Origin: Saccostrea cucullata
Lineage: Eukaryota
Length of the DNA: 64,000 nt
Assembly (NCBI RefSeq): GCF_032062105.1
Contig: NW_026928122.1
Span: forward strand, 186,001-250,000
Direction of reading: 5' to 3'
Shown in pieces: positions 21,301 through 52,618 of the stretch (the first letter of the stretch is position 1; the number at the start of each line of letters is the position of its first letter). The notes beneath the pieces were generated by a model. That model was not told the DNA's origin. It was given only the letters and a program-made list of their open reading frames with translations, and made no database searches. Position numbers and translations under genes: made by a program.

Positions 21301-24300
21301 AGCATGATGCTAATTTAAAAAAAAGTGTCTTTGGTGTGTAGTAATTCATGTTGATATTTTATTTTTTCATCAAGAGTCATAGATCTGGGAGTAATGACAC
21401 CATGTGAGAAGATTCTTCAGACAGCCATGGAGGAAAATGCAGGTGGGGATTATAAAAAGAATATTCAATAATAACGTTAAATTAATTAAATCAGTTGATT
21501 TCATGTTGATTATATTATTTTTATAAATATTTGATACATCTGTATTTATTTATTATACCCTGTGTTCACTTTTACATTTATCCTTAAAACAATAATTGTT
21601 TCTTGTACATGGAAATAATTTAAAAGTGGTTGTCAAGGTTTTTGAATTTTTTTTACATAACATTACCTTGACTTGTTTCAGACATCATTGGTTTGTCTGG
21701 ACTCATCACCCCCTCCCTAGATGAAATGATTTACGTTGCCAAGGAGATGGAGAGGATTGGAATGAAGGTCCCCCTTCTGATTGGTGGAGCCACTACCTCA
21801 AAGTACGTATTGCCAATCACTTGAATAAATATTGTTTAATACCCTGTAAAGAATAACCAATGATAAAATAATCTTGCGAAGATTATTCACACAAATTTAG
21901 AGAAAAAAATTGGCATTAAAAAACTGAAGGTATGAAATTTTAAAAAGGCAATTTTATTGAAAATGTGCCTGTATGTTCTGTGGTCATATTATTTATAATC
22001 TGATCAATAATTGAAAATCTGTAGAAAAATTTTTTCTTTGTTTACTTTAGGACCCACACAGCAGTTAAGATAGCCCCAAGATACAAGTCACCCACCATTC
22101 ATGTATTGGATGCCTCCAAAAGTGTGGTGGTGGTCATGTATTGGATGTTTTTTATCCCCTCCAAAAGTGTGGAATGTAATTTTCCTGTGGGGGTGTGAGT
22201 GAGTGTGAGCATAACAGAAGCTGCCCAAACAATTATATTTTTTTGGATTGAAGAAATAAAAATTTTATTTATATTGTGTATACTATTCATATAGTGTATT
22301 AAAGTGGACAAAAGATGGGAAAATCCATCTCTCATTTGTAATTAGATTCACTTTATGGATATTAGATCAAGAATTAGCAGATAAATTTCATATGCAAAAT
22401 GTAAAATTAATCTTGTAAATGTTGAAAAAATAACCTTTAAGTGTTAAATGATGTCACTTTTTTATCAGTGTTCACAACTACTTGATGAGGAAAACAAAGA
22501 TGACTATATAGATGAAGTGTCCGAGGATTATGAGGAAATCAGGACAGATCATTACAGTGGCCTTAAAGTAAAGTAAGAAAATACAAAATTGTATCAAAGA
22601 AATTATACAAGAAGAAAATCACAAATTACAAGACTATTTCAAAATTAAATGGAATGTAAATGTAAAAGCTTAATTTGGATTCTCTTATATTCAAATTGGA
22701 TCATTGTTAAAATTGATTGATTGATTGTATATTGTTGGTCCCTCTCTAATTTTTTCATTACTTGCCTATAATATGTAACTCGGCACTGAGGGCCATTGAG
22801 CAGGTGGTCTTCTTTGAGCATTTCTCGGTTTAATGTTTATATGGATTCTCCCACAGTGGGATTCGAACCTGCAATGTAAGGATCAACTCCTTCCTTCGTG
22901 AATCTAGAGCAGACGCTCTTACCACTGCGCCACGCAGCCGACTTGTTAAAATTGATCTGGATAACAAAAAACAAGTCCATAGTTAAATTTTGTAGGTCAT
23001 TCTGTTAAAAGAAATGGATTGTAATAGATATATAGATATAATATAGCATCGGAAGAAGAGGTTTAGAATTCTATGAAAGAACACTCCTAAGACATTTAAT
23101 TATTTACAGCAATTATTGAATGCCATGTTTCTCATTTCAGGACAGAAAATATTTGTCAATTGAAAAGGCCAGAGAGAAGAAGCTCTCTATAGACTGGACC
23201 ATATCTCCACCAGGTTTGTTTGTTTGTTAAGTTTGTTTGTTTATTTTGATTCTTTTTGCTTGTTGTTCAGTAACATTGTTTCAATAATGTTGGGAACAGC
23301 TAACTCAATTTTAACAAAAATTATTCAATAAATGCAATCCTGGCTCTGGGACCCTGAAATATAGACAAGTGCACTTTTGATGTCAGTCTCACTTTTCACT
23401 ATTAATTCCTCATTAGACTTTGTTTGAAATAAGTTTAAGTTTATGGCCTCAGAGCCCTGTTTTAAAAAAAAAAACGATGTTCATACATGAAGTTTATTTT
23501 ATTGTTTTCACAATATTTCTTGAAAACAATTGTCTAACAATTCTACAAATTAAAATGTGACCCAGGAAATTTGACTCTTGCTTACATGTACATTTAACTC
23601 TTAAGAAATGGATAATTAGTTTAGGTTGTATATAAAATTAGACTTTGATATTCTCCCTATTCAGCTCCACAACCCACTGTAATAGGCGTAAAAACATACG
23701 AGAATTACGACCTATCTCGCCTGATTCCATACATTGACTGGAAACCTTTCTTTGATGTATGGCAGCTCAGAGGGAAATACCCCAACAGAGGGTATCCCAA
23801 GATATTCAAGGACAAAACTGTGGGTAAGAGTTTATTGCACAGTTCAGTTCATTAAAAAAATGTAAGCTAATATTTTAAATGTATGCAATAGTTTGTACAT
23901 GGATAAACTAATTATCAGTTGTAATATATTTAATAAGTTGATAAATCATTAGATAAAATATTCTGCCTTCTATAGGTCAGTATTTCATTCTTTCTGAAAA
24001 GATTATCATGCATAGTAAGCTTCATGATTGAAATGTGACATTTGATTTTGAAATGTCAGGTCCAGAGGCCAAGAGAGTTTACAATGATGCCCAGAACTTG
24101 CTGAAAACGATAACCACCACCAACAAGCTGCAGGCCCACGGTGTGGTGGCGTTCTACCCCGCCAATAGTGTGGGGGATGACATCGAGGTGTATAACAAGG
24201 ACGGGGAGGTGATAGAGGTCCTTCATGGACTCAGGCAACAGGTATAAGAACAAATACATCTATTGGGAACTTTTTTTTCTCCAAAGGAAAGACATTTTTA

Positions 24301-26158
24301 CTTTCGCATTTCTATGATTTTTATATTAATATGATCAGAGTTAACTTTTGGGACTTAAGTTAAACAGACATTGTTTCTATTTTGTTAATGTCATTTCCAT
24401 GTGGAATCAAATTGTACAATTACCTTTTTAATAAAAAAAAATTTTGTTTGAATTTTCAGGCAGAGAAAGAAGCAATGGACAAATCTCCATATTTATGTTT
24501 ATCAGACTTCATAGCTCCTAAGAGTTCTGGCAAGAAAGATCACATTGGCTTGTTTGCAGTGACTGCTGGTCATGGGGTGGATAAAATGTGCAAAATGTAA
24601 TTATTAGAATAATTTTTATGCCCCTTAGAAGAAGGGAGGGCATATTGCTTTGCTGCTGTCTGTTGGTCCATTTAGTTTCCGTTCATTTTCTTCACAACCC
24701 TTGCACATACTGAAATGAAATTTGGTATACAGGCATATCAGATAAATATCTAGGCCAAGTTTTGTTTTGTCATTTCCATTTTTGGAGTTATTCCCCTTGA
24801 ACATTGAAAAATTCCAGTTATTTTTTGTTAATTTTTTTTTGTTTGAAATTTTTACAGATTTATCAGGTAAATAAGCAATGGACAAATCTCCATTTTTATG
24901 TTTATCAGACTTAGAAAAATTCCAATTATTTGCAGTTTCCGTTCATTTTCTTAGCAACCATTGCACATACTGAAATGAAATTTGTATATAGATTTATCAG
25001 TAACTGCTGGTTCTGTTTTGGGGTGGCACCATTTTTAAAATGTCAGAAAAATGTAATTTAGGGGGTATAATTTTAAAAATGATATTTTTATTGTAAGAGT
25101 AGTTTAATAATTTTTTTATATGTTAGTTAACTTATGAGTTGTTGTCTTATTCCAGATATGAAGAGAAGTTTGATGACTATGGAATTATCATGGTCAAAGC
25201 TTTAGCTGACAGACTTGCAGAGGTAAGGTGCCATTGCATTGAGTCACAAATCATGAAAGATGTATATTTGATAGAGCAGAAATTGATGGCATATCAATTG
25301 TCTCAGCTACGTATTAATTCTTTTCATTCAGGCATTTGCTGAGGAGTTGCATGAGAGAGTGCGAAAAGAGATTTGGGGTTATGCATGTGAAGAGGTGTTA
25401 GAAGCCAACGATCTGCACAAAATTAAATATCAGGTATATTTTTTTTTGGCTTCAATTATCTATTGATATTGAAAATTCTGTTGAATTACATTATATGGTT
25501 ACTAGAATTCTCTACTGTATTCTAGAAACATATTTGGAAAACAAAAGTTTTCCAATAAAATAAATAATGAATATGTTTATAGCATTCATACTCTAAAGCT
25601 GTTTTCAAAATGTTTTCCCATGACCTCATGTACATATACGTGCATATTTTATTTGAAATGATTAGCTTTAGTGTCGAGTGAAAATTATTTCTTAATGACA
25701 GGGTATAAGACCAGCACCTGGTTACCCTAGCCAGCCTGATCACACAGAAAAGGAAGTGATGTGGCGCCTCCTAAAGGCTGACAAAGTGGGGATAACTCTG
25801 ACAGAATCCTTAGCAATGTTCCCTGCGGCTTCTGTGTCTGGATTATACTTTGCTCATCCAAAGTCAGAGTATTTTGCTACAGGAAAGTTGCAGAGGGACC
25901 AGGTGAGTTAATAAGTGGCCTCCTTATAAACCCTAGTACAAAAAAGTAAATTAAAAAAGTCATTGGTTGTAAAGCTAATCTTTTGGTTGCTGATATATAC
26001 CTGTATTAAGTAACAGGAAATTATTACACAATATATTACAAAACTAAATATATCGTTTTTTTTCTTTCCAGATTGTTGAATATTCATCAAGAAAGTCAGT
26101 GGATGTAGCAGTGACTGAAAAGTGGCTAAGCTCAGTGTTGGCTTATGATCCAGAATAA
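12369..26158 (+). CDS. MTR: Cobalamin-dependent methionine synthase (5-methyltetrahydrofolate-homocysteine methyltransferase), about 30 exons
   Basis: Exon 1 12369-12411, then [176 protein letters not shown]; last exon IVEYSSRK...AYDPE* ends at 26158. Confidence 0.97.
16330..16545 (+). repeat. Degenerate tandem copies of an MTR exon 3' end/donor region inside the following intron
   Basis: cagaaccagaaatctcaaaggtttg recurs as cagaacctaaaatctttaaggtgtg and caaaaccagaaatcttaaaggtttg. Confidence 0.55.
17170..17456. mobile_element. Short MITE with long imperfect TIRs in an MTR intron
   Basis: aggccatacttaaaaatttgtttgtttggaattgccgcct versus aggcgggaggcaattccaaacaaacaataattttatattggccc. Confidence 0.7.
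18421..18646. mobile_element. Short TA-flanked MITE with TTTAGCGA/TCGCTAAA internal repeats
   Basis: ta|cagtataagtagaatttttagcgag ... ctcgctaaatttccacttgtatgg|ta imperfect inverted ends. Confidence 0.65.
19044..19250. mobile_element. Degenerate short MITE (CTGTA...TTTCGCG type)
   Basis: ctgtagatcactaaattttcgcga ... ctcgcgaataaaaagtgattta imperfect inverted ends; repeated TTTTCACGA/CGCGA motifs. Confidence 0.5.
19920..20216 (+). pseudogene. Duplicate of two MTR exons (cobalamin-binding DVHDIG exon and next) lacking GT donors; intact copies at 21161-21263 and 21374-21442
   Basis: 19931-20033 and 20148-20215 match the downstream exons at the protein level, but their ends read TTCAA-gaaata and AATGC-tgacc instead of gtaagt/gtgggg. 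Confidence 0.7.
20218..20800. repeat. Tandem array of 4-5 copies of a roughly 140-bp satellite-like monomer (Helentron-associated type)
   Basis: ttttacatagaaatatataggaaaattctttaaaaatcttcttctcaagaatgaccaagccataattcatcat recurs near 20223, 20359, 20499, 20650 and 20767. Confidence 0.85.
22718..22942 (-). mobile_element. tRNA-derived SINE with (ATCA)n tail and 14-bp TSD
   Basis: On the minus strand: A-box TGGCGCAGTGG, B-box GGTTCGAATCCC, tail (ATCA)n. TSD TTGTTAAAATTGAT at 22704-22717 and 22943-22956. Confidence 0.85.
24612..25065 (+). mobile_element. HINE/Helentron-like non-autonomous element remnant intermixed with scrambled MTR exon sequence
   Basis: TTTTTATGCCCC...GGGCATA hairpin start followed by a GTCTGTTGGTCC microsatellite remnant, and two copies of agtttccgttcattttc...ttgcacatactgaaatgaaattt. 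Confidence 0.55.
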
Positions 26159-28299
26159 AGAGGGTCCAAATTATTGATGCAGAATAAAGTTTTCTATGTG
26201 TATATATTTTACATATTGAAAATGTGGATCATAAACTTTGGTGATATCAATGTTTTCACACATGGTTCTCTACTCATGTGGCATAGTATTTCAGTCATAA
26301 TCATTATTTAAATTTTTACAAATTTGAATTATCTATAAGTGCTGTCTTTAAAGACAGCAATAGTATGTATTAAACATATTTAAAACACATACATATATAA
26401 GTGTATTTTTGAGGGAAGAATGAAGCAGAGACAAGAATGCTTCAGGACTATCTATAATCTAAGATGGCATGTATATGTATTGTGAAATGAATTTTTGAAT
26501 GAAAATTGTCACATCCTACTATGTAGGTATAACAAATAAATAATTATATTTTTAAGTGCAAAGAATGTGAATTAAGCAATTAAATTATTTAAAAACCAGC
26601 ATGTTTCATGCTTCTTTATTTTTTTGAAATGGCAAGTGGATATGTATGTAATTAATCTAAAGCCATAAAAAAAATTTCTTGGATCTCATCTCTTCCAAGG
26701 GTGCCCCATTGACCCTTTTTATAACTAAATCAATAAATTAAAAATAGCAAATCACCTCCATCATCATTATTTGAGGTTTTGTACAATGTAAAAAGCTGCC
26801 TCATCATGTTTTAGGGGCAGTAAACAAATGCCTCTCTCTCTCGTTATATTTCTTGAAAAAAGGCCTGAGAACCAAGGAGTTAAAAACATTGCATGGCCTA
26901 GGGCTTGTATAGGGGATTCATTTAGGAAACCGAAGAAGTGTGAGTAGTTCAGGCCCAGGGAACATGAAACATCTTAATCCTAAGTGAAATTCTTTATACT
27001 GAACTAAAAATGTTGTAGAAGTTGAGCAAATCAAAAGTTAAATATTTTTCTAAATTGCTTCACAAAACTGCTATCTGCAAAATAAGGGATTAATTCAATT
27101 ATTTTAAAATATTTTACAGGCAATAGATATTTTGACTTAAGCCTTAGGTTTGTTTCATGAACATTGGTCATAATGGTTGATAGTAGAATTCTTAGGTGCC
27201 AAATTATAACTAGTACTTTCACATGTAATGCTAGAACCAGAAGATTGAAGGCAAAAATAGTGATTTTATACCATTTTTTGAAGAAGAAGGTTGAACAAAA
27301 GACAAAACCTATGAAGATAAGATAATATTGAAGTACCTTCCTGCAATAAATATGGAGAATGAGTGTATATTTTTTTAAATTCTTCAGATCCTTACAAGTT
27401 TTGTCATTAAAGTAAATTATGGTTGTTTCAGATGACATACTGTTTTTATAAACACTTTTGTAGGTGTTGTTTTCCCCTCATTTTTACATTGAAAGTAGGA
27501 TAATATTTCAAATAAATCACATTGAATTTCTTCACTGACCTCCAACCCCACTTCCAGTATGACACTGGCATTCTTGCATAATTAATATAAACTCATTATT
27601 TATACTGTAAAACAATGTAATTTTCTCAATATCCAAATAAAATATTTTGCAATATTGAGTAAAATTGGAATTTTTCTCGTTATTTCCATGTTTTATTTTA
27701 AAAAAAAAAAAGTTTATAAAAGGATATTCCTTTTTGCACTACTATAATCATATGTACTGTCATAATTTAGAGTATTCACAAAGAAGGATCACTTCTAAAG
27801 GACCTGTTATGGCCCTGTGAATTTCTGGAAAAAAAAACAAAACTGATCAGTTATAGTTGAAAATTATGCACTTTTAAATATCTCTTGGGCTTTGAGTGAC
27901 TGCATATCTTCAAATTTAGAGAATACTGCAATTTTTATAAAGTAAGGTTTTCAATTCCTGGACTCGGAGGAATTTTTTTTTTATAGGGGAAGAAAGCACC
28001 TAGTGCTTTCTGGCCACTACAATGACAAATTATGAATAATGATTCCAGTAAAGATCCCAGTGAAATGTGGCTGAAGTGTTGCTGACATGTGTTAAGCGAT
28101 AAACAGTAGATAAATGAAGTAAAGATCACAGAAATTGTTGAAAATATTTCTATTTCCAACAAGCCAAAGTCCCTATATCACAGTTGACATGGTACAATAA
28201 TCGTCACTCCATTTTTTTAATAGAAAAAGTCAAGAAGTTCCCACTAAATGATTAATATCATTGGTATGTTGTTACTTTAATAAGTTTCATCTTAAACCA

Positions 28300-28785
28300 G
28301 GCCTCTTTCTTTACTCCTCACTAAGATAATAACGGTTGTGAAGAAGACTTCAAGAAGGAAACTTCAAGAGTAATGTGCAACAATATATTCAAGAAGTGGT
28401 GTAAATCAGATGTGGATACTTAAAAATTCCAAGGAACTTTTGGACAATTTAAAACACAAGATTTTACCAAAAAATCAACAGCTTAAAAACTTACGACTTT
28501 TCAACTTTATACACAACCATTCCCCACGATAAATTAAAGTCCAGGTTTTTTGATTTGAAAGCTGCTTTTTCAATAAAAAATGGAACTCGTAAATCTACTT
28601 ACCTTGTCATTGGTCATTTGCAAAGTTATTTTGTTTAAAAATCATCCTGATTGTACACAAAAGTAATTTGAAGTTGACATCAAAAAGATGCTTGAGTTTC
28701 TGATTGACATTGTCTATGTGGTTTTGGAGACCAGGTCTTCCAATAATCTACTGGAATTCCCATGGGTACCAACTGCGCCCTGTTA
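28300..28785 (+). mobile_element. Decayed Penelope-like retroelement reverse transcriptase fragment
   Basis: Frameshifted translation contains MWILKNSKELL, KTYDFSTLYTTIPHDKLK and GIPMGTNCAP, typical of Penelope RT motifs. Confidence 0.8.
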
Positions 28786-29896
28786 CAATGTAGAACTTAC
28801 GAAATGATGACTTTAAACGAGACTGCTGATATTTTTGTTTCATCAACTTGTTTGTCAATGATTTACTTCGTTTTGAAAATTGTTCATACGTAAAGCATGT
28901 TCTTGCGTATCGAATCAACTGAGATATATTAACTCCGTATGCAAGTTTTGAAGCTATATTGCTTGCTGCATAAGTAGGGGAAGTCGGCGATTGAAGAGTT
29001 TTAGAGCTTGGTTGTTAAATTACAATTAAAGTCTTTTTTCAAGTAAAATATCCAATTATGAAACAGATGTGTCATACTCTGTGGTATCTTTTATCTTAAG
29101 CTCACCGGGATATATCGACAATGGAAATTACCATTGTTTATTTACAATACGCCGTCGGTATATCTAAATGTCGATTTGAAGGCGACAGCAATTGTTTTCT
29201 TTTCGCACAAAAGATTTTGGACAAATTCTGCTTCATATGAATACAGAATATATATGCTAATACATGTATATCTGAAATATATCGATGAGACAATTGTGGT
29301 AAAGTTTGAAAAAATCTACAGGAAATTTAAAAAGAATTATAACTATCCAAATAAAAAAGTTTCAATCAACGAAAAAGGTATTCTTTTATATCCTTATGAA
29401 GGAAGTAAGCAAAATTTAAAATTATTTTTGAAAAAAGTCATTTTTGGTTTTAAAAAAAGAGAAGAACGAAATAAAACACCATTTGAAACATTTACATAGA
29501 AACCAAAAAAAATATTTCAATCCTTTCTACAAGTTTAGAGCTACAAAGTAAAATTGCAAACGCAAGTTGTATAACATTGCGACTTTTTATATAACAGCTT
29601 GTTGAATTTCATGTTGATATTCATCAGAAAAAGGATGTTGTACATTTATTCGCCTTATTGTACTCACACAGTGAGTGTTACCCTATCTGTAACAACTAAG
29701 CCTCCAGCTGTGTTGCCATTGTGCCATGGAGTGCGTTAAGAAGTTATTTGACTATTGTACCACAATGGAAGATGAAATTTGCCAGTACGTATGTTGATTA
29801 ACCCTTTGTCCAAAACAGAACGTGGAGAAAACTCGGGAGACGCCATCACCTGCGTGAATGTACGAAAAAAGGGGGGAAATGATCAATACGAATTCC

Positions 29897-29938: not shown

Positions 29939-32900
29939 ATGGAAGGCAGGCGTTTCTTGCCCTATGTATTGGGTATTGTGGTCGTAGGTTTACTAGAATT
30001 CACCAGCAGTGCCCGTGAGTACTATTTATATAGGTACAAGGTGATCCTTAAGAATATTGGGAAAAGATCGAACCATTAAAGGCATTTTTGCGTCCCTACC
30101 TAAATTCGCCCATTTAGATTAATGTCAAATTAATCATGAATCATTCAACAAATATAGCTATTTTAAGCGTTTAAACCTTCAATTTCAAAACAACATTTTT
30201 GGCATTAAAAAAGTCTGAATCTGTCAGAACAAAAAACAAACTGAACCACAAGGGGAAAGAGATATACTGAAAATGTAATTTACTTCCACGTAAAACTTCA
30301 CAGACAAGTATTTTCTGTTTTTTTTTTCTATTCATATAATGTTTATTCCCCCTTTTTACATTGTTTACGAGATTCTCTGTGAAATTTAAGATAAAATAAA
30401 AGTTTCCTCCTATTAAGGATGAAATACCACTATGGAGATTAGCGTTTTTATCTAAAGAATAAGCTGGTCAATCATTTGCTTATTCATTTCTTATAGCTAA
30501 ACCTTTATTTTGAAATTTGGAAAGTGCGACAGTATGAAGATACATTATGTCTTTCTCAGGCAAATTACAAAAACGTATAAATGCTCTAGTGAAAATATTT
30601 ATCACTTTTTATATAGTTACAGATGTTTTGGGAAAAACCCCTAAAAGATTTCAGAAGATTTCATCTGTCTTTATTTTTAAAAATTAGACAATACTGCCTT
30701 TTACAGATGAGTGCAAAATTGAAGAAAAAACGCTCTCTTGTATGAGCAGGAGACTGCAGTCCAGTAGTGGTCAAGAAAAAGAGATTAGAAAGTTTTGCAG
30801 ACTGGATATCCCAAAAGAAATAAAAAATATAAAAATCAAACTTGTGAAGCAGGATAGCGTTTCTAAACCATGCATATATCAAAAGTCGTTCCGTCTAGTC
30901 AAGAAGAAGGGTATAAGACATTTGGAAGTTCGCAATGGATGTCGAGGAAAATTCAAGATCCGATATCGCAGGAAAAGTATGATATCTACATGTTCTTTCA
31001 CCCGTCCTCATTTATGAAGGCTAATTTTCTCAAATAGTTCAATATTAATTTCTTGACATTATTGGATTGAGCTCCATTTACTCAAAAGAATTTTGTAAAA
31101 TTCCTTGCAACATAGATTGCTCCAGAAAATGCGGCCCAAATGCTATTTGGAAGAAAAGACGAAGAAGCAGAAGCGGCAAATGTCAATGCAAGAGAGGATA
31201 TCGTGGAAATCCGAAGAAGGGAGGATGTATTGGTAAGGTGATTTTTCCAATTCATGAAAATTATCACACTCTCAAAACACTTTATGAAAAACACGAATAA
31301 AAGATATTACAAATATAAAATAAGCTAAAGGCTGATAAATTCAAAAAGGATACAAATGCACTTTTTTTCTGCCTGCAATTTAAAAAAAATTACTATATCT
31401 ATCAGAAACATATCGAAAACCTCTTCTGTGCAAAAAATTCTAAGTTTGTAGAAATAAGTTGACAATATTTTGGACAACTTGACAAAATAAAAAGATGGAT
31501 AACTATGGCAAAAATTCCCTTCTTTCTCCCCAAACCTTTTCAGCTTCTTGCACAGCCTCAGCTTTTGGAGACCTTCACTATTCAGTATTCAAATTAATAA
31601 TTAATACATTTGTGGAGAATTAAAATTACATTGTGTTGACAACTTGTAAATATATAGGATACCAATGACTATTTTTCAAACCCATCTTTCTGTCTTACTC
31701 TCTTTCAGCTTCTTGCGTATGCCGAGCTTCTGGAGACCCACACTATTCAACATATGATGGACAGAAAATCCACTTCATGGGCACTTGCAAGTACACGCTG
31801 ACAAGAACATTGGAAAAACAACCCTGCGCCTTTAACATCATGGTGTACAACGAGAGACGAAACAACAAGAAAACAGTGTCCTATACCAAACAAGTGGATG
31901 TGGAAATCGGCACAAACAGGGTTTCACTATTCAAAGGCAAGATATCCCAGGTAGGAACCTTCATGCACATCATTCCTCTTGTGTGCGGTGTCGCCATGGT
32001 TAAATACTACTATGTCTTGAAAAGAGTTTCATGCATGGGTACTTTTTGGTTTGAGAGATTTTCAGCTGAGGTCGAATGGAAGTTGATGGTATCTGTTGCA
32101 TTTGTAGGTGAATGGAAGAAATGTAAACATCAGAGAAATGCCCTTTGAAAAAGATGGCATTTTGTTGACGACTGTAGGGCGCCGTTTCGTCAAACTTCAA
32201 TCCCCGTCTTGCGGATTGACCGTGCTTTGGGATGGCAAGCATTCTGTGGAAGTGTCTGCCGACAAGGGTAAGTACGGCGGCAAAATGACTGGAATCTGTG
32301 GGGACTGCAATGGAAAGAGAGACGACTTCCGCTTGGCCAATGGAACAAATGTATCACAAATGCCAGCAAAGGAAAAGTACAGGGAAATCGGAGATAGTTA
32401 TCGCGTGACGGATGCAAAGAGTCCTATATCTGCGTGAGTACGACTTTCTTTATACTTTGTCCGACAGTCAAGTTTTGTTCCTTGTAGCGTTTGCACGTGC
32501 TATGATATATCGATGAAAACTGTAAGAATGGTTGATAATTTAGATGTGGTCCTACACCGGCATTTTCAAGTTGCAATCCGGAACAGACAAAGAGACTCAG
32601 TTCCAATGCAGTATGTGGATTGATGGAGAGTACATCCGACGAAAATCCATTCAAAGCATGCGTCAATTGGATGAAACAGACTAAAGATGCGGACGGAAAC
32701 AGTCCATTTTCTTCTTGTCTTATTGATGCTTGCAACAACGACGGAGCTACATTGAAGACAGTGACCTGCCCCGCCTTAGAGGAATTCGAAGAAGTATGTG
32801 TAGAGAGTGGTTATGCCCCACCAGAGGTTAATAACTGGCGAAACATCACTTCCTGTCGTGAGCATTTGTATTTCATACATATACTTCTCATTGCATTTAT

Positions 32901-35900
32901 CTCTATTCTATCAATTGCTTTGTAATAAGGGACTGACAGAACAATTAAGCATTATTTTTTGGGTTCATTTTAATAGCTCCAAAAATGATATCATGTACAT
33001 ACTTTTAAAGCATTGACAGAGGTTGAAAAATGCAGAGAAAATGAGGAGTACGTAGAAGATGGAAGTGGATGTCCCAACACTTGCCTGTCCCCAAAATCAG
33101 AAGAAAGCTGTTCTGATCCTGATGTTGCAGGGTGCCAGTGTAAGAAAGGTTTTGTGAGAGATGGAGATATCTGCATACCTGTCAGTCAATGTGGATGCAT
33201 TATACTGAAGAAACGCGTCCCTGTACGACATTTCACTATCCTTTTCTTAAGAGATAAAACATTTAAAAAACATTTAATTGGAGACCATAAAAAAAGTCTA
33301 TGTTCATTTTAACAAAAAATCTCTTCCCTCTTGGATATCGAAAGTATTTTTAAGAAATGATTCGAAAACGGTAAATTGAAAAGGTCAAAGATACATCAAA
33401 GATTTTTAATATTTAGAATAATCTGATTCTATCTGCAAATTTATAACATTAGACGCTCTCGATTTTGTAGGTAAACTCAAGCATACTTTCAATAGACTGC
33501 AAACAGAGAATTTCCTGCACTCTGAGGAGTGGTGTGCCCGAACTGAAAGAGGAACCAGCAAAGTGTAGTGCTGACGAAATATGTATGAATCTAAAAGGAA
33601 GAGGGGAATGTAGAAAAGGTAATCCATTTTGAACGATTTTTTTTTCAGTTAAGTCTAAGTTATTAATAATTTCATTATAGATGATTAAGAAAACGAGTGA
33701 TATATATAAGACCTTTTAATTAAAGACACAAAAGGTTCCAAAATCCCCAAAATTCAAGGATAATTAGAATGCCAAACAATAAGCAGAAAACCTGGTGAAT
33801 TACAATCGTATTATTGTAAATCTGAATTTTTCAGCCCCAGCCATCGCCGCTGAAGCACCCATTTCACCTCCTAAATCTAGCTCACCTGAAACTGCACGTA
33901 AGCCATTTTATTTTGTCAAAAAATTGATAGAGATCACTTTTACATGAAATGTTATGAACCCGCTTACGTTTAAATTAACTTGTTACCAGTAACCTTCTAA
34001 AATATATGAATGCATTCGATCAAATGACTGTTTGTAGGGATATCGGTGTGATTGGATTGGGTAGGGTAGGGATGAGGTTTGGGGGCGGGAAGAGAGGCTA
34101 CTTTAATACTTTAAAAACATCGAGTGAATAATAATACATATTTCGATGCAGGTAAATGTAAAGAAGAGAAAAAGAATGTGAGGTGTGCTAGCCGTAGATT
34201 ACAACTCAGTAGTGGTCGACAGAAGGAGATCAAAAAGCTTTGTAGACTGGGGAGCACCAGACAAATAGAAGACGTCAGAGTCCAACTAGTCAAGCAAGAT
34301 AAAGTGTCTAAACCTTGCATCAACAAGAAGTCGTTTCGCTTACTCAAGAGGAAAGGGAGATGGCATTTGGAGGTTCGCAATGGATGCCGAGGGAAATTCA
34401 AGATCCGATATCGCAAGAAAAGTAAGATTTATTTCTCATTCTCAGAGAAAGGGGTTTTCCTACATTAGTTCTCATCAAAAATGTACGCTGTTAAGCTGTT
34501 GATGAGATGCTTGATCTTTTTACGACGTAGATTGTTCCAGAAAATGCGGTCCCAATGCTGTTTGGAAGAAGACACGAAGAAGAAGAAGAGGCAAATGTCA
34601 ATGCAAGAGAGGTTATCGTGGAAATCCGAAGAAGGGAGGATGTACCGGTAGGTGATTTGCGGATCTTAAAACTTACAGCATGATGGAAACAGTGTATGAA
34701 AAAGATATGATCAAAACAAGAACGCAGATGAAACTGACAAAGGAAATATTTCACGTGGAGATAAAAATTGACTTGGTGTTGACAACTTGTCAAGATTAAA
34801 TAATGTATCTAGAATACCGATGACTATGTTCCAAACCCATCTCTCTGTCTTACTCTCCTTCAGCTTCTTGCGTATGCCGAGCTTCTGGAGACCCACACTA
34901 TTCAACATATGATGGACAGAAAATCCACTTCATGGGCACTTGCAAGTACACGCTGACAAGAACATTGGAAAAACAACCCTGCGCCTTTAACATCATGGTG
35001 TACAACGAGAGACGAAACAACAAGAAAACAGTGTCCTATACCAAACAAGTGGATGTGGAAATCGGCACAAACAGGGTTTCACTATTCAAAGGCAAGATAT
35101 CCCAGGTAGGAACCTTCATGCACATCATTCCTCTTGTGTGCGGTGTCGCCATGGTTAAATACTACTATGTCTTGAAAAGAGTTTCATGCATGGGTACTTT
35201 TTGGTTTGAGAGATTTTCAGCTGAGGTCGAATGGAAGTTGATGGTATCTGTTGCATTTGTAGGTGAATGAAAGAAATGTAAACATCAGAGAAATGCCCTT
35301 TGAAAAAGATGGCATTTTGTTGACGACTGTAGGGCGCCGTTTCGTCAAACTTCAATCCCCGTCTTGCGGATTGACCGTGCTTTGGGATGGCAAGCATTCT
35401 GTGGAAGTGTCTGCCGACAAGGGTAAGTACGGCGGCAAAATGACTGGAATCTGTGGGGACTGCAATGGAAAGAGAGACGACTTCCGCTTGGCCAATGGAA
35501 CAAATGTATCACAAATGCCAGCAAAGGAAAAGTACAGGGAAATCGGAGATAGTTATCGCGTGACGGATGCAAAGAGTCCTATATCTGCGTGAGTACGACT
35601 TTCTTTATACTTTGTCCGACAGTCAAGTTTTGTTCCTTGTAGCGTTTGCACGTGCTATGATATATCGATGAAAACTGTAAGAATGGTTGATAATTTAGAT
35701 GTGGTCCTACACCGGCATTTTCAAGTTGCAATCCGGAACAGACAAAGAGACTCAGTTCCAATGCAGTATGTGGATTGATGGAGAGTACATCCGACGAAAA
35801 TCCATTCAAAGCATGCGTCAATTGGATGAAACAGACTAAAGATGCGGACGGAAACAGTCCATTTTCTTCTTGTCTTATTGATGCTTGCAACAACGACGGA

Positions 35901-38900
35901 GCTACATTGAAGACAGTGACCTGCCCCGCCTTAGAGGAATTCGAAGAAGTATGTGTAGAGAGTGGTTATGCCCCACCAGAGGTTAATAACTGGCGAAACA
36001 TCACTTCCTGTCGTGAGCATTTGTATTTCATACATATACTTCTCATTGCATTTATCTCTATTCTATCAATTGCTTTGTAATAAGGGACTGACAGAACAAT
36101 TAAGCATTATTTTTTGGGTTCATTTTAATAGCTCCAAAAATGATATCATGTACATACTTTTAAAGCATTGACAGAGGTTGAAAAATGCAGAGAAAATGAG
36201 GAGTACGTAGAAGATGGAAGTGGATGTCCCAACACTTGCCTGTCCCCAAAATCAGAAGAAAGCTGTTCTGATCCTGATGTTGCAGGGTGCCAGTGTAAGA
36301 AAGGTTTTGTGAGAGATGGAGATATCTGCATACCTGTCAGTCAATGTGGATGCATTATACTGAAGAAACGCGTCCCTGTACGACATTTCACTATCCTTTT
36401 CTTAAGAGATAAAACATTTAAAAAACATTTAATTGGAGACCATAAAAAAGTCTATGTTCATTTTAACAAAAAATCTCTTCCCTCTTGGATATCGAAAGTA
36501 TTTTTGAGAAATGATTCGAAAACGGTAAATTGAAAAGGTCAAAGATACATCAAAGATTTTTAATATTTAGAATAATCTGATTCTATCTGCAAATTTATAA
36601 CATTAGACGCTCTCGATTTTGTAGGTAAACTCAAGCATACTTTCAATAGACTGCAAACAGAGAATTTCCTGCACTCTGAGGAGTGGTGTGCCCGAACTGA
36701 AAGAGGAACCAGCAAAGTGTAGTGCTGACGAAATATGTATGAATCTAAAAGGAAGAGGGGAATGTAGAAAAGGTAATCCATTTTGAACGATTTTTTTTTC
36801 AGTTAAGTCTAAGTTATTAATAATTTCATTATAGATGATTAAGAAAACGAGTGATATATATAAGACCTTTTAACTAAAGACACAAAAGGTTCCAAAATCC
36901 CCAAAATTCAAAGATAATTAGAATGCCAAACAATAAGCAGAAAACCTGGTGAATTACAATCGTATTATTGTAAATCTGAATTTTTCAGCCCCAGCCATCG
37001 CCGCTGAAGCACCCATTTCACCTCCTAAATCTAGCTCACCTGAAACTGCACGTAAGCCATTTTATTTTGTCAAAAAATTGATAGAGATCACTTTTACATG
37101 AAATGTTATGAACCCGCTTACGTTTAAATTAACTTGTTACCAGTAACCTTCTAAAATATATGAATGCATTCGATCAAATGACTGTTTGTAGGGATATCGG
37201 TGTGATTGGATTGGGTAGGGTAGGGATGAGGTTTGGGGGGCGGGAAGAGAGGCTACTTTAATACTTTAAAAACATCGAGTGAATAATAATACATATTTCG
37301 ATGCAGGTAAATGTAAAGAAGAGAAAAAGAATGTGAGGTGTGCTAGCCGTAGATTACAACTCAGTAGTGGTCGACAGAAGGAGATCAAAAAGCTTTGTAG
37401 ACTGGGGAGCACCAGACAAATAGAAGACGTCAGAGTCCAACTAGTCAAGCAAGATAAAGTGTCTAAACCTTGCATCAACAAGAAGTCGTTTCGCTTACTC
37501 AAGAGGAAAGGGAGATGGCATTTGGAGGTTCGCAATGGATGCCGAGGGAAATTCAAGATCCGATATCGCAAGAAAAGTAAGATTTATTTCTCATTCTCAG
37601 AGAAAGGGGTTTTCCTACATTAGTTCTCATCAAAAATGTACGCTGTTAAGCTGTTGATGAGATGCTTGATCTTTTTACGACGTAGATTGTTCCAGAAAAT
37701 GCGGTCCCAATGCTGTTTGGAAGAAGACACGAAGAAGAAGAAGAGGCAAATGTCAATGCAAGAGAGGTTATCGTGGAAATCCGAAGAAGGGAGGATGTAC
37801 CGGTAGGTGATTTGCGGATCTTAAAACTTACAGCATGATGGAAACAGTGTATGAAAAAGATATGATCAAAACAAGAACGCAGATGAAACTGACAAAGGAA
37901 ATATTTCACGTGGAGATAAAAATTGACTTGGTGTTGACAACTTGTCAAGATTAAATAATGTATCTAGAATACCGATGACTATGTTCCAAACCCATCTCTC
38001 TGTCTTACTCTCCTTCAGCTTCTTGCGTATGCCGAGCTTCTGGAGACCCACACTATTCAACATATGATGGACAGAAAATCCACTTCATGGGCACTTGCAA
38101 GTACACGCTGACAAGAACATTGGAAAAACAACCCTGCGCCTTTAACATCATGGTGTACAACGAGAGACGAAACAACAAGAAAACAGTGTCCTATACCAAA
38201 CAAGTGGATGTGGAAATCGGCACAAACAGGGTTTCACTATTCAAAGGCAAGATATCCCAGGTAGGAACCTTCATGCACATCATTCCTCTTGTGTGCGGTG
38301 TCGCCATGGTTAAATACTACTATGTCTTGAAAAGAGTTTCATGCATGGGTACTTTTTGGTTTGAGAGATTTTCAGCTGAGGTCGAATGGAAGTTGATGGT
38401 ATCTGTTGCATTTGTAGGTGAATGAAAGAAATGTAAACATCAGAGAAATGCCCTTTGAAAAAGATGGCATTTTGTTGACGACTGTAGGGCGCCGTTTCGT
38501 CAAACTTCAATCCCCGTCTTGCGGATTGACCGTGCTTTGGGATGGCAAGCATTCTGTGGAAGTGTCTGCCGACAAGGGTAAGTACGGCGGCAAAATGACT
38601 GGAATCTGTGGGGACTGCAATGGAAAGAGAGACGACTTCCGCTTGGCCAATGGAACAAATGTATCACAAATGCCAGCAAAGGAAAAGTACAGGGAAATCG
38701 GAGATAGTTATCGCGTGACGGATGCAAAGAGTCCTATATCTGCGTGAGTACGACTTTCTTTATACTTTGTCCGACAGTCAAGTTTTGTTCCTTGTAGCGT
38801 TTGCACGTGCTATGATATATCGATGAAAACTGTAAGAATGGTTGATAATTTAGATGTGGTCCTACACCGGCATTTTCAAGTTGCAATCCGGAACAGACAA

Positions 38901-41900
38901 AGAGACTCAGTTCCAATGCAGTATGTGGATTGATGGAGAGTACATCCGACGAAAATCCATTCAAAGCATGCGTCAATTGGATGAAACAGACTAAAGATGC
39001 AGACGGAAACAGTCCATTTTCTTCTTGTCTTATTGATGCTTGCAACAACGACGGAGCTACATTGAAGACAGTGACCTGCCCCGCCTTAGAGGAATTCGAA
39101 GAAGTATGTGTAGAGAGTGGTTATGCCCCACCAGAGGTTAATAACTGGCGAAACATCACTTCCTGTCGTGAGCATTTGTATTTCATACATATACTTCTCA
39201 TTGCATTTATCTCTATTCTATCAATTGCTTTGTAATAAGGGACTGACAGAACAATTAAGCATTATTTTTTGGGTTCATTTTAATAGCTCCAAAAATGATA
39301 TCATGTACATACTTTTAAAGCATTGACAGAGGTTGAAAAATGCAGAGAAAATGAGGAGTACGTAGAAGATGGAAGTGGATGTCCCAACACTTGCCTGTCC
39401 CCAAAATCAGAAGAAAGCTGTTCTGATCCTGATGTTGCAGGGTGCCAGTGTAAGAAAGGTTTTGTGAGAGATGGAGATATCTGCATGCCTGTCAGTCAAT
39501 GTGGATGTTTCCTGTTTAATGAACGCTTTTTGGTACGTTTACCTTATAACACTATTTTAAACAAACTAACTTTATTAGAATGTTTTTAGAAGAATGTATT
39601 GCATCTGAAAAATTTTTTAACATGTGTAACATTCTTTACTCGGAAAAAAAAGCGTGATGGAATTCAAATATTTTTTTGTTTAACAAAAAATAAATATAAC
39701 TCCGTCTCTTGTATTACTTTACAGCGGAAGTGACCAATTGGTGTCCCTCTGTATATTTTAAATATATAAGTGAAGAAAAGCTCAAATATTTTTGTTTATG
39801 TCCTTATAGGTGAACGCAAGCACTCTCTCAAAAAATTGCAAGGAAAGAATGGTATGCACACTGAAGGATGATGTCCCACAGATTATAAAGGAACCAGCAG
39901 CTTGTGGTGATGATGAAATGTGTGTCGATATCAAAGGAAAGGGAGAGTGTAGAAAAGGTATTGATAACGTATTTTTTTTAATTTTTAAAATTTTAATTAA
40001 CATACCTGTATTTCAAAAAAAAAATTTTAAATACTAAATGTTAAATAAAGTAAATGAAAAATAGATTTATTGTCATATTGTTTTTGTTTTTCGATAGATG
40101 AATTAATTGATTATATGTTGTTTTACATCCAATTCGACAATTTTTCAAACATATAGAGGTGTAAGAATAGTCATATGTAATTCGCTTAAATGCCGAAATA
40201 AAGGTTCTTTTGTATTAAAATATCATGGAAAGTTATTTTTGTAATTTGACAGCTCAATGCCCAAACGGAGAATTAGTAATCAAGTGATATGAAAAAAAAT
40301 ATATCAGAAATAAAAAAAGGATATCTAGTTAAATATTTACAGAAAATTTTTGGTTCTACGTTTTATGTTTAAAGTCTTGTCATTAAAGATTCCATATGTC
40401 TATAGAGAATATACATTGAAATATTAAGATGGATCATTGCTATTTGACAAGTATGTGTTTTTTCTAAGTACATTAGACTGTTGACATCTCTTATGATATT
40501 TAATTGATTTATATTAACATATACCAATTAAATGACAAATTACAACTGCTTAAACATGTTTAAAACCAGATAGCTAGATTTGAAAATTGCATATTTCTTT
40601 ACATTAAATATTGTTAATTTTGTGCTGGACTTGAATGAATGATAGATACAACGGAATATGATATGATATGATGGACTTGAATGAATGATAGATACAAAGG
40701 AATACGATATCATTCTTTACAATTATATTATCTGTATATCATATTTTATGTATCAGCATAAAGATTCTTATTTCTGTTATATTCTTTATAAAGTTATATC
40801 GTTTTGGAAATTATAAAATGAGTACAAGAATTGGTTACTTATTAATTTCTATATAAGTACATGTTTGTAATTATACTACATAAGTACATGTTTGTAATTA
40901 AATTATAGTCCCTTCTACCACCCTGAGATCTCCAATTCCACCGACAAAAGCTTACTCACCACCAACTGGAAGTAAGTTGTACCATATATTTTTATGTTAT
41001 ACTTAATTACGCTGGAAGTATAGCTAAAAACTTAAAAACTAAAAACTTCCCACGAGTTTGCTGAATTGTATATTTATAAAAATATGGGAAGGAAACCAAA
41101 TAATTTTTGAAGATTAAGTCAAATAAATACATGTTTTGATAATATTTCAGTCAAATGTGGTAAAAAGCACTGTGCAGCAAATGCAAAATGTGTTGACAAT
41201 AGTGTGTGTGTATGCGAAGATGGATTTTATGGCATTGGTGATATAAGATGTTCAAGTGAGATTACTTTGATGTTTCAAAAACACATTACACGTTTATAAA
41301 ATTTATCTATGATTAAATTCATTATGATAGAATGTAATAAATAATGGACTTTATTATAAAGCACACGTATCTTTCTACTCTTTAATTTAAAAAAAATTAC
41401 CTTTGAATTACATTTGATTTGTGCTGTGTTTTCATTTCAGTTTGCCAAAAAATATTCAGATCCTTTTTTCGGTCAATTTGTCTAGTAAATTTCTTCTAAT
41501 TTCTAGAAATGTGTACATGTGGAAGCGGTGGTCCCAACCTATTTGAAACGTATGATGGCAAGATTCTTCACTTCTCTGGAAAGTGTCAATATCAGATGTC
41601 ATCCTACACAGATCCTCTGGGTTCCTGTTCTTTTTCGGTGGACTTAGTAAACAAACGAAAGGAGGAAACTCATCTCATCGTCAAAATTCTAGGAATAAAC
41701 ATCAAGTTGCTCCAAAGCCAACAGATACAAGTATGTTATCCATCCATATGCTTTTTATCTACATGTTTTATTGGTTTTGTAGTTTTTATATCGTTTCTCT
41801 GTTCAAATTATATAATCTAGGTTTTTTTTCCCAGATAAATGGACAGGATCGTTCCCTTCCTGCTGGTAATTCCAAGTTTATAATCTACAAAGCTGGTTTT

Positions 41901-44900
41901 GCTATTAGGCTGTTTGTTCCGAGCTGTGGTTTCTTAGTCAGTTGGGATGGTGACACCAACATGTTAATTTCTGTCCCAGTTGCGTATTCTACTGGACTTG
42001 ATGGTATCTGTGGCAATTGTAATCAAAACAAAAAAGATGACCCGACCACTGCTGATGTGTTTTCAAAGTACACAGTGACAGCATTGTCCAGATCAACGTA
42101 TGTGCATTATTTTTCTCTTAATGCAAAGTTTACAATATATAATGTGTGTATATGTATGTCAGGAAGATATGTCATAAATTTTTATAAGGAAAATACTAAG
42201 TAAAAAAAATAAAAAGTTTTGGTATCTCAAGTTTACAGCTTCAAAACTTAAATGTTAAGAAGAATTTTCTGAAAATACTAGTAACAATGATTAAACATTT
42301 ATATGCAGGTGTGAAAATGCATTCTCCATCAAACGTTGCAACAGACGATCTAACTTGATGATGAAGATGCGAGTTTGTAAATACCAGGATCGAGCGATCA
42401 AACGAAAATGTAATCAGTCGTCCCAAGAAAGTAAAACGTTAATGAAGGCCTGTATTGACAGTGGTTGTGACTCCATGGCTAGAAGAAAGAATAAAGTTGC
42501 AATAGAGACTGGATGTCAGACGTTAGACTTGTTCTCTGGAATCTGTAGGGCCAAAGGTCATGATGTCAATTGGAGAATATTCCCGCTTAACGATTGCAGA
42601 CGTAAGTCTTTTTATCATCACTCATTCAAATAACTGATTAAATATCACATATATTGCTCTTAATCAGCTCAAATACATTTCTAATGGTCTTACTTTACAA
42701 TTCGAGTTCACCCAAATCTATGTTATAAATTCATCTACGAATGGTTAGAAGATGCAGTTAAAGAAAATGTTTCGAGACAAACTTAGTATATGTAATATTT
42801 GAATTGTAATCAAATGTTTTCAATCAAAATTCAGGACCAAGATGTAAGTCAAGTGCAAACATGGAGACAAACTTTGGTAAAGGGATATCGGGTTGTCCAC
42901 AGACTTGTGGATTTGCTTTTGAGGGAAACTGTACTTTGCCCTTGGCTGAAGGCTGCAAGTGCAAAGAAGGCTTTGTTTGGGATGGAGACAACTGTGTGAG
43001 ACCTAGCAAATGTGGCTGCACAACGCCTGAAGGGGATTATATAAGTGTAAGCGTATGCATTAGGTTTACGTCATCACGATGAACAACTTCAAATTTAAAA
43101 TCATTTTAAGCCCCACCCTCTCCTTTCCTTCCACATGCACTAGACGAGGTATACAGTGTTGACCCTTTCTGTTATTTCTCTTACTTAGTTTTCCAGACTT
43201 TTTGCTATGCTTGTTGATAGCAATCTGTTTTTGGTTGTTTGTGTCTCTTTGTTTGTGTATTAAAAAAGTTTAATATTTCAGTTTGGAAAGTCTCTGATCA
43301 GCGAAGACTGTTCACATGTATACAAGTGTGTCAGGAAAAACGGAAAAGCAACACTGCGGGAACAGCCTGGACCATGTGTGAATAAAAATTGTATTGTTGT
43401 TAATGGCGAGCCAAAATGTACAACGTGTAAGGAAGGGTTTGAAAAGACACCTAACGGATGCATTCCAAGTACGTTTGATTGTATTTAGTTCAAAAGTGAA
43501 CTACAAAATATTCATTGATAAATGTATTGGTCTAATCATTTTTTAACATATTCTTTAATTACAAAAAGTGAACTACAAAATATTCATTGATATTTGTTTT
43601 TGGTCTTGTAATTTTTTAACATATTCTTTAATGACAGAGTTTACCACAACAACAGCAATCCAAACACCTGCTTCTATGCCACCCCAAGGTATTTAATATG
43701 CAATCTTTACCCTGTTCAGAAGATAATGCTTGTTTTAATAACGATAATGCATATTTACTTATATCTGTACATGTTACACGATTCCTGTTTGTGTGTTTTA
43801 TCACTATTACTGTCAAAATATGGTGCTATAAAAATGAATAAAACATCGACTTTTAACTTTTTTCATTCAATATTCCATGACTTTCATATTGGGTTAACTT
43901 TGAAATTCGATCAAGTTGATCTTGATAGAAGGAACAAGCTGAATATGAGCTTTCAAGTGAATCAATTAACAGAAACATTTTTAGGGTACCGGTATTATGG
44001 AGCAGATGGTCATGATAGAAACCCTTAGTTTTTACATAATTTTACCGGTACATGAAATTAATAATACCTGGGTATACTATATTCTGTAGATTTAAACACT
44101 CCACCAAACTTCAACTACCACTCCAGCATTATGTTTACTGTTTTAAAAATAGCTCACGAAGACAAAATGAAGCATTAGAAGGAAACACCTGTAAAAACTC
44201 TTTACAATGTATATTTGAGTATATATAACTTATTGGGCAATTATGTTAGACGTGCTAGGTCAAAAAGGTTATTTCTGCATTGGGATACTCAAACTGATGC
44301 ATTGCATTGTTCATCTAATATACAGTTATTTTGTAGGAGCGCCTCCAGTGGCCTTTTCCCAACCAACTCGTTCTCCTGTCTTATCGCCTTCAACAGGTAA
44401 TTTTGAATTCATATAAAACAGTCAAGTTATCAAACTGCTATTTTACTAGTAATTTACGAAAATGTATACGAACTGAAAGCATATCTTCAAATATACATGT
44501 AAAAAGCATCTTCAACCAACTGCTTGTCATAGCAAACAATGCTTAAACAGCAATACTTTAGATCTGAATTAGGGATACAAGATAATTTTTTTTAAGGTTT
44601 GATCTCATTGAAAAGCACAGAACGGCTACACTTAGAACACAGAAAACTACCGTTCAAATTATAAGCATTGAATAAATTGGGTCACAATGCAGGTTTTAAT
44701 TTTTAAATCTAAGTAATTATGGAATATCTTCTTTACTCAGATTCAAGTACACCGCCAAACACACCGGCGACTTCTACATCGGCTTTTATCTCTACAGAAG
44801 GTAATCTTAATAAACCAGAGAGTTGATTACTTACTTATGATATTAATTAATTTTTTTTAACATAATTTTAAAAAATATTCTTAGTTACATTCTTGTGTTG

Positions 44901-52295: not shown

Positions 52296-52618
52296 AATTC
52301 AATACATGAACAAAATGTCTCAATATTTCTTGTAATTTATTGAAATAAACTATCTTTAAAAGACCCCTGTATCACCATGTTCAATGTACATAATGGAAGA
52401 TTAAATGTGGAGAATAGAAAGCTTGCAAATAACACATAAACTATGGAGTATTGTTGACAAAAGGACAGGAAAGCCAAAAATTCAGATTGGCCTATTTACA
52501 GGAATACTATACAGATTTTTAAAAAATAATTTTTGTGGACAATCATTGTTTCTTAACGTCCATGCATTTACAAATTTACTTTTCCTTCAGTGTAAAATAT
52601 ACGATGTTTCCACAGAAT

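Follow-up and report, generated by a model that had tools for sequence, protein, structure and literature searches.

A secreted VWD-repeat protein of oysters with cationic DUF3011-like modules, a candidate component of larval adhesive

Described relatives and the architecture of the oyster gene

The larval adhesive of oysters is hard to extract and its proteins are unidentified according to PMC6337334, which also lists, as adhesive candidates, five consecutive Pacific-oyster gene models, CGI_10010553-57, that are named 'IgGFc-binding protein (zonadhesin-like)', are pediveliger-specific, and consist of VWD/TIL pieces and one EGF-array piece. The general design of such an adhesive, a lectin-type domain combined with vWD, EGF and positive charge, has been described before in flatworms and sea stars: Mlig-ap1 (flatworm) and Sfp1 (sea star) (PMC6410801), like limpet P-vulgata_1 (PMC7333891), are large, secreted, Cys-rich proteins with vWD, C8, EGF and lectin-type domains, and Mlig-ap1 is an extremely K/R-rich cohesive vWD-type protein inhibited by heparin (PMC6410801). 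Another scaffold is that of vertebrate FCGBP (PMC8267560, PMC11796319), with tandem VWD-C8-TIL units, GDPH sites and an IgGFc-binding N-terminal domain; as for the DUF3011 domain, Aplysia AKL consists of three such repeats in tandem and is secreted as a free protein (PMC5484111).

How does the present locus compare? The window, the whole 64,000-nucleotide stretch of Saccostrea cucullata DNA that was analysed, contains on the forward strand, as do all features below, a gene at 29939-52295 for which a hand-built model of 54 exons, open from ATG to stop and with AG/GT sites, predicts 3167 aa (about 350 kDa, pI about 9.1, 8.7% Cys). RefSeq holds it as a partial model, XP_062614735, named 'zonadhesin-like' and nothing more. 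The earlier note had delimited a feature at 30707-37576, within which the modules do lie, although the gene extends much further, with two more VWD-C8-TIL units, Pro/Thr/Ser exons and 13 EGF-like exons. The predicted signal-peptide exon (29939-30014), the sole hydrophobic stretch, has counterparts of 56-59% identity in Ostrea edulis and in Magallana-type contigs, where they likewise precede the first module, and the 3167-aa model has no transmembrane segment apart from it; the product is a secreted protein with repeated VWD blocks.

The signal peptide leads directly to module 1 (30707-30976; 5 Cys, net +19), followed by a K/R-rich EGF-like exon (31116-31232) recognised by composition, with just 5 Cys and a weak Pfam EGF_3 match. 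Unit 1 (31709-33618) comprises a VWD in two exons with GDPH, C8, TIL and a TIL-adjacent exon, with Pfam matches to VWD, C8 and TIL and GT-AG joints seen in RNA, which also places the TIL exon acceptor at 33011; an RNA loose end at 33197 reads the ending of the last unit, unit 3. A Pro/Ser/Ala linker exon (33835-33897; second copy 36989-37051; RNA joints 33616-33833 and 33897-34152) connects to module 2 (34152-34421; 5 Cys, net +25) and unit 2 (34531-36772; K/R EGF, VWD with GDPH, C8, TIL and TIL-adjacent exons), and module 3 (37307-37576), an identical copy of module 2, to unit 3 (37686-39957), which has the same composition with a distinct TIL 3' end and TIL-adjacent exon. A Pro/Thr exon, an EGF and a fourth VWD-C8-TIL unit follow (40909-43468; conserved in O. 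edulis and the assembly L004), lacking GDPH and module, then four short Pro/Thr/Ser-rich exons forming a mucin-like stalk of about 80 aa (43638-45022), 13 EGF-like exons of 99-111 nt each in phase 1-1 (45342-49702), and a fifth VWD-C8-TIL unit, an EGF and the last exon (49859-52295; AATAAA near 52344), which contains Cys and matches no known family. GDPH is thus present in the three repeat VWDs and missing from the last two.

With FCGBP the gene shares tandem VWD-C8-TIL units, GDPH and the lack of a cystine knot; it differs in the cationic modules set between the units, in its 13 EGF exons, in its novel last exon, and in lacking the IgGFc-binding domain, for which Pfam gave no match in the exons or the orthologues (domain libraries were searched exon by exon, or with stored database proteins as queries). 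Gel-forming mucins and vWF have a C-terminal cystine knot, for which the domain search gave no match in the last exon, and a long PTS domain, where the oyster gene has its stalk of about 80 aa. The earlier note had proposed a polymerising scaffold; without a cystine knot, mucin-type polymerisation is unsupported, the Cys count per repeat unit is even (40), and even FCGBP is reported to dimerise, at its C terminus (PMC11796319).

Charge and kinship of the modules

The three modules are single exons at exactly the positions given in the earlier note, each of 270 nt, phase 1-1 and AG/GT bounded, and each continuing in frame into the K/R-rich EGF-like exon and the VWD, C8 and TIL exons, so that the order proposed there agrees as well. 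In an RNA contig from a close relative the repeat module is spliced to EGF-VWD-C8-TIL, with the module 2-to-EGF joint in three RNA runs and the EGF-to-VWD joint in two; splicing to the VWD exons is thereby borne out for the repeat module, module 1 lying outside the coverage of the RNA contigs checked. The extreme Lys/Arg content noted earlier is real: oyster modules carry net charges of +14 to +25, and K+R make up 22-36% compared to a mean of 14% in bacterial DUF3011 repeats, which are about 25 residues shorter. Within the 564-aa repeat unit, the head formed by module and EGF (129 aa) carries a net charge of +40 and is followed by the GDPH-type VWD and an acidic C8-TIL part (net -11); successive units are joined head to tail by splicing.

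Is the module a DUF3011 domain at all? Pfam PF11218 scores the modules at 16.9-17.3 bits (E 0.005; 17 bits for module 1) and their best oyster relative at 20.4 bits, all short of the 25 bits that Pfam sets as its gathering score. When the profile contains bacterial DUF3011 repeats only, the modules reach 23-26 bits (module 1, 25.6), whereas about 8000 module shuffles gave at most 13.8 bits, so that the resemblance is not due to chance. Furthermore, hhalign aligns the module with bacterial DUF3011 repeats at 95.7% (E 4e-9), and a module-only profile retrieves DUF3011 proteins from 1.84 billion sequences at E 6.5e-7 to 5e-4. Judged from these profiles, the module is a distant relative of DUF3011 (PF11218). 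The four core Cys, G-C-R-(A/G)-x-F and L-x-K-Q are kept, as is S-F or S-Y at the G-x-(S/T)-(W/Y/F)-G site. However, none of the eight oyster modules examined has the Trp of (I/V)-W-V, which 98% of the 485 bacterial repeats carry; Glu, Gln or Ser stands there instead, and K/R/Q/D occupy the two Gly positions around S-F or S-Y. The likeness claimed in the earlier note therefore holds as profile and predicted-fold kinship, below the Pfam cut-off and with the Trp/Gly motifs lost.

Seven canonical DUF3011 exons elsewhere in the S. cucullata genome retain the Trp and both Gly, and other genes there fuse DUF3011 to VWD-C8-TIL, kringle and WSC domains, so the architecture is not unique; DUF3011 is a shuffled phase 1-1 exon of oyster extracellular proteins. 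The canonical and the Trp/Gly-less cationic exons form a natural pair in one genome with which sugar binding by single repeats can be tested.

The predicted structure of the module is small and all-beta (pLDDT 89, from an alignment that included DUF3011 rows), and a single-sequence prediction of module+EGF gives the same beta pattern, being uninformative on disulfides. Against Atlas DUF3011 clusters the model reaches TM 0.66 and 0.62, depending on the query, in a comparison of predicted structures on both sides in which an unnamed viral cluster likewise reaches 0.66. A PDB sequence search with the module gave no match. Of the checks suggested earlier, profile and Atlas comparisons thus supported DUF3011, and Foldseek and VIA-align against PDB gave weak beta-sandwich matches at background level, both for H-type lectin or discoidin (E 0.32, Z 5.4-5.8) and for a tailspike C-terminal domain (Z 6.3), so that an H-type lectin is not claimed.

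The repeat fold and cysteine framework are common to the oyster modules, Aplysia AKL/ADEL and bacterial DUF3011; the oyster modules are longer and more K+R-rich, have lost the Trp/Gly signature, and occur singly, one per VWD unit, spaced by 475 aa of EGF-VWD-C8-TIL. The module could also be read as a true sugar-specific lectin of the galacturonate type, as in AKL/ADEL, with the protein cross-linking acidic glycans through a defined site. The retained core Cys, L-x-K-Q, S-F and GCRG-F are compatible with this, as are the S-F at the corresponding place of AKL (PMC5484111), in a residue-level comparison that rests on one published peptide, the suitability of basic residues for a uronic-acid ligand, and the H-type lectins heading the non-significant PDB matches. 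Nevertheless, we consider it unlikely, given the replaced Trp and Gly and the sub-threshold score; DUF3011 has no mapped binding site, and that the domain binds sugar at all has been deduced only from AKL as a whole. A search aimed at AKL/ADEL returned nothing but bacterial DUF3011 among its best 120 matches. With the Trp and two Gly lost and this net charge, lectin activity is unproven, and the lectin-like glycan binding of the earlier note appears unsupported by the sequence; electrostatic binding of acidic polymers would be the likelier role.

A possible role in larval adhesion

We propose, with a probability of roughly 0.5, that the product may act as a cationic protein giving cohesion to a secreted adhesive, which most likely comes from the foot of the pediveliger larva at settlement. 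The DUF3011-derived beta-sandwich would be a disulfide-stabilised scaffold whose Lys/Arg surface grips polyanions mainly by charge (candidates are sulfated or uronic glycans, acidic adhesive proteins, biofilm and periostracum), the array itself would supply avidity, and the VWDs would probably self-cleave at GDPH and remain disulfide-linked, as reported for FCGBP. The support comprises the open 54-exon model with signal peptide, RNA splicing, oyster-wide architecture, the charge pattern, Trp/Gly loss with K/R gain relative to both bacterial repeats and canonical exons of the same genome, and three further lines. The gene is present in six RNA-labelled runs and next to absent from eight others, which fits restricted expression, with sample stages coded and absence from contigs no proof of silence. 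The pediveliger-specific CGI_10010553-57 cluster (PMC6337334) resembles the S. cucullata gene in that its successive models carry VWD, TIL and EGF-array pieces, and judging from names and domain order it is probably the counterpart. Mlig-ap1 offers the analogy, a likeness that, as with Sfp1 and P-vulgata_1, is one of architecture and composition: those proteins use galactose-binding or C-type lectin-like domains instead of a DUF3011-derived one, and the charge of Mlig-ap1 lies in long low-complexity K/R tracts, that of the oyster protein in a folded module and EGF inside every repeat. The tyrosine content is low (2.7%), so the product is not a DOPA-type surface glue.

The architecture is common to oysters, as the survey called for earlier indicates: it recurs in O. 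edulis, Magallana and further oyster contigs, and XP_052697478, XP_056022045/47/48 (RefSeq), K1PIX3 and K1PR13 (UniProt) are orthologues with 60-80% identity in VWD/C8/TIL. The M. gigas orthologue is split into K1PIX3, 'IgGFc-binding protein', and K1PR13, 'Zonadhesin', accession searches returned no record tying these to CGI_10010553-57, and database models of O. edulis skip module exons that its DNA contains; in Magallana, some units are apparently module-free. The DUF3011-like module is unnamed in the UniProt and RefSeq orthologue entries and, for CGI_10010553-57, in the available part of PMC6337334. No methionine synthase/Dak neighbours were seen in the 10-kb flanks of the O. edulis locus, a range too short to judge. 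A strong larval-adhesive candidate that databases hold as fragments thus obtains a complete gene model, and its unannotated domain a name.

A bolder and rather doubtful extension makes the product the main cohesive protein of larval cement, an array of variable copy number with DUF3011 rebuilt as a polycationic glycan-gripping head disulfide-stapled to the next EGF, and with a thiol made available for cross-links between chains where an exon is skipped or a unit lacks the module (35 vs 40 Cys); if true, this hard-to-extract glue would gain a defined sequence and mechanism.

A counterpoint to an adhesive is that FCGBP-like proteins occur in adult oyster mucus too, IgGFc-binding proteins being reported from C. 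virginica mucus (cited in PMC6337334). The gene might then encode an adult mucus or mucosal-defence protein whose cationic heads on an FCGBP-like scaffold trap bacteria or food on gill and palps; GDPH-bearing VWD-C8-TIL repeats, the short Pro/Thr/Ser stalk, the strongly cationic heads and the metatranscriptome libraries among the runs holding the gene are consistent with this. Its near-absence from many RNA runs labelled as the same species, the probable match to a pediveliger-specific cluster, and the lack of both a long PTS domain and a cystine knot make such a role improbable.

VWD and EGF proteins are found in shell and periostracum matrices and in gamete-adhesion matrices, and the database names read 'zonadhesin-like'; however, the name reflects shared VWD domains and nothing else, no MAM exon occurs among the gene's exons and the transmembrane anchor of zonadhesin is absent, so that a matrix or gamete-adhesion protein is very unlikely.

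Copy number of the tandem array

Modules 2 and 3 lie in a 3155-bp tandem repeat (31651-39507, about 2.5 periods) whose 99.4-99.7% identity extends to the introns, at a single locus of the assembly. The triplication described earlier is accordingly real as three exons, of which only two are distinct in sequence, in an array whose copy number is lineage-variable: O. edulis has nine units with a period of 3.64 kb, L004 a period of 3.19 kb, and Magallana at least 15 VWD units (15 in a partial model of Magallana angulata). Unequal crossing-over would lengthen and homogenise the array. That the repetition is an assembly artefact, the true gene having one or two modules, as the near-identity and the fragmented assembly might suggest, is hardly credible and largely refuted, since units are near-identical inside each species and differ in sequence and period between independent oyster assemblies (O. 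edulis, L004, M. angulata), and since in a DNA run of a relative repeat contigs are 5-14 times deeper than unique flanks, pointing to collapse, not inflation. Given the counts in O. edulis and Magallana, three units in S. cucullata may be an undercount, and a relation of array length to settlement strength becomes testable across these oysters.

Gene structure and transcripts

The three exons that the earlier note described as DUF3011-like modules preceding EGF-like/VWD/C8/TIL blocks lie exactly at 30707-30976, 34152-34421 and 37307-37576, each of 270 nt, in phase 1-1 and bounded by AG and GT. The exons 3' of them bear out the rest of that description, with VWD, C8 and TIL above the Pfam cut-off and a weak EGF_3 match. 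The modules are parts of a single gene, flanked by methionine synthase and Dak1-domain kinase genes, for which a hand-built model of 54 exons has an open frame between the ATG at 29939 and the stop at 52295 (3167 aa). The model starts with a signal peptide, its sole hydrophobic stretch, followed by three copies of module-EGF-VWD-C8-TIL-TIL-adjacent exon, a fourth VWD-C8-TIL, short Pro/Thr/Ser exons, 13 EGF-like exons, a fifth VWD-C8-TIL, an EGF and a last exon that has no family assignment. A degenerate copy of a 99-nt EGF exon, with internal deletions, is found at 46600-46660 (+), with the exons at 46287 and 47221 on either side. Database searches were run exon by exon or with stored database proteins as query; XP_062614735 ('zonadhesin-like', Saccostrea cucullata) is a database fragment corresponding to the repeat units.

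A 1722-nt RNA contig (run X5) runs from the TIL-adjacent exon through the linker, module 2, EGF, VWD and C8 to TIL, with GT-AG joints where predicted, and the module-EGF and EGF-VWD joints recur in RNA from three and two runs, respectively. Thus, module 2 is joined through EGF to VWD, and the objection that these exons might not be spliced to the VWD exons fails. Because no RNA contig covers module 1 or the signal exon, their splicing is deduced from exon phase and from contigs of Ostrea and of Magallana type, where the exons follow in the same order. The stretch is contained in six RNA-labelled runs, with next to none in eight others; the stages of the runs are coded.

A modified DUF3011 module and its canonical relatives

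The assignment to DUF3011 holds as kinship but falls below the Pfam threshold (top match, 17 bits against a cut-off of 25), and lectin activity is not demonstrated. A profile built from oyster modules only recovers DUF3011 proteins among 1.84 billion sequences; a profile from 485 bacterial repeats gives the window modules 23-26 bits, the best of about 8000 shuffles reaching 13.8; and hhalign relates the module to DUF3011 at 95.7% (E 4e-9). The predicted structure is all-beta (pLDDT 89), and its TM values against DUF3011 models are 0.66 and 0.62, both sides being predicted; there was no significant match among solved structures. Atlas feature matches to three DUF3011 clusters (0.83-0.86) are a lead only. 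The module keeps the four core cysteines, L-x-K-Q and GCRG-F, and all eight oyster modules have replaced both the Trp of (I/V)WV, which 98% of bacterial repeats have, and the two glycines flanking the S/T-aromatic pair, with a net charge of +14 to +25 compared to a bacterial mean of +1.6. Judging by these patterns, the oyster module is a modified member of DUF3011.

Seven canonical DUF3011 exons elsewhere in the genome, near neutral and with the Trp/Gly motifs kept, are likewise in phase 1-1 and sit in EGF-VWD-C8-TIL-DUF3011-kringle and WSC-DUF3011-kringle genes, so that DUF3011 is a shuffled exon in oysters, fused to VWD-C8-TIL in more than one gene. By exon order, the former architecture, its VWD carrying GDPH, occupies L017:6033-9462 (contig G000:C13720) and L018:5809-9876 (G000:C17556; WSC upstream); WSC repeats followed by canonical DUF3011 and two kringles occur in L019, L020 and L021 (G000:C17556, C12175 and C8205); all are on the minus strand. 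Among the loci retrieved, L013/L014 and L015/L016 are apparent haplotig pairs. The portions of the DUF3011 literature examined contain no description of a DUF3011-like/VWD-C8-TIL fusion.

Could the oyster module bind sugars? All functional evidence on the family comes from whole AKL, a sea-hare lectin with three repeats that is inhibited best by galacturonic acid (PMC5484111). The loss of the Trp makes lectin activity less likely, and we consider it unlikely that the module is a true uronate lectin. The L017 and L018 genes, a second DUF3011+VWD fusion family with the Trp/Gly signature, are the better candidates for a true lectin-VWD protein.

A young array and a cationic unit

Three module exons are present, as the earlier note had it, but modules 2 and 3, which do not differ from each other and share 65% identity with module 1, belong to a young tandem array at 31651-39507 with a 3155-bp period and 99.4-99.7% identity, introns included. 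The assembly contains this locus once, and an artefact can be ruled out given comparable arrays in other oysters: the chromosome-scale Ostrea edulis assembly has a signal exon, one first-type and eight repeat-type modules and the same downstream exons, in nine units of about 3.64 kb with 99% identity; a Magallana angulata protein model has 15 VWD units (99% internal identity); and a further oyster contig has a 3.19-kb period (99.96%). Units are 60-80% identical across genera and near-identical inside each genome, which suggests concerted evolution. A DNA run from a close relative, at 2-5% divergence, has contigs with a depth of 432-756 over the repeat and 52-81 over unique flanks; although contig depth does not measure copy number, a difference in this direction suggests that the true number of units may exceed three.

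In each 564-aa unit, the head formed by module and EGF carries a net charge of +40 and the C8-TIL part is acidic (net -11), with a GDPH-bearing VWD in between. Module and EGF have five cysteines each, the canonical DUF3011 exon has six, and the unit has 40 with the module and 35 without; the spare N-terminal cysteine of the module might bond the spare one of the EGF, yielding a single cationic head. FCGBP is reported to be cleaved at GDPH and yet kept together by disulfides (PMC8267560), and it makes C-terminal dimers (PMC11796319). The domain search of the exons found no cystine knot in the model, and therefore the mucin-type polymerisation proposed for the scaffold is unsupported; the array itself accounts better for multivalency. 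In function, the nearest model is Mlig-ap1 of flatworms, a cohesive protein rich in K/R that heparin inhibits, and Sfp1 is a vWD/C8/lectin analogue (PMC6410801); the design class is already known from other marine adhesives.

Orthologues, site of action and neighbourhood

RefSeq divides the Ostrea edulis orthologue (L009, L022 and L023; OX387708.1, about 40.58-40.63 Mb) among no fewer than three models called 'zonadhesin-like', which omit most of the module exons contained in the DNA; RefSeq models lacking the module are probably wrong, as those of O. edulis are against their own DNA. Magallana-type contigs (L008:474-2092) start with signal peptide-module A-EGF-module B-EGF, modules A and B being different and in tandem, and Magallana-type protein models carry the module at every third VWD unit only.

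In the Pacific oyster, PMC6337334 presents CGI_10010553-57 as five consecutive models, each bearing the name 'IgGFc-binding protein (zonadhesin-like)'; they comprise VWD/TIL pieces and a single piece with seven EGFs, and were chosen as pediveliger-specific adhesive candidates. This is the pattern that fragmentation of the module gene would be expected to give, and the orthologue in M. gigas is in fact divided between K1PIX3 and K1PR13, which are named like these models. Accession searches found no link between the two sets, so their identity, suggested by names and domain order, is only probable. A cohesive protein of the larval foot fits this choice of candidates; an adult mucus or defence protein seems rather improbable, and a shell or gamete protein highly so.

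Upstream of the module gene, a short frameshifted reverse-transcriptase-like fragment at 28690-29010, with the motif G-I-P-M-G-T-N-C-A-L and no Pfam match, is probably a decayed retroelement. The cobalamin-dependent methionine synthase gene (12621-27800, +) contains a duplication (19904-20214/21136-21440, 84%) and a 141-bp tandem repeat (20223-20727). Exons at about 9500-12400 (-) resemble syntaxin-5, an identity that Pfam did not confirm, and Pfam identifies an ML-domain (NPC2-like) exon at 631-933 (-). Downstream, a short acidic reading frame lies near 53310-53400 on the minus strand, and the dihydroxyacetone/triose kinase gene with its Dak1 domain (54576-62000, +) harbours an intronic 156-bp satellite-like array at 59924-60904.
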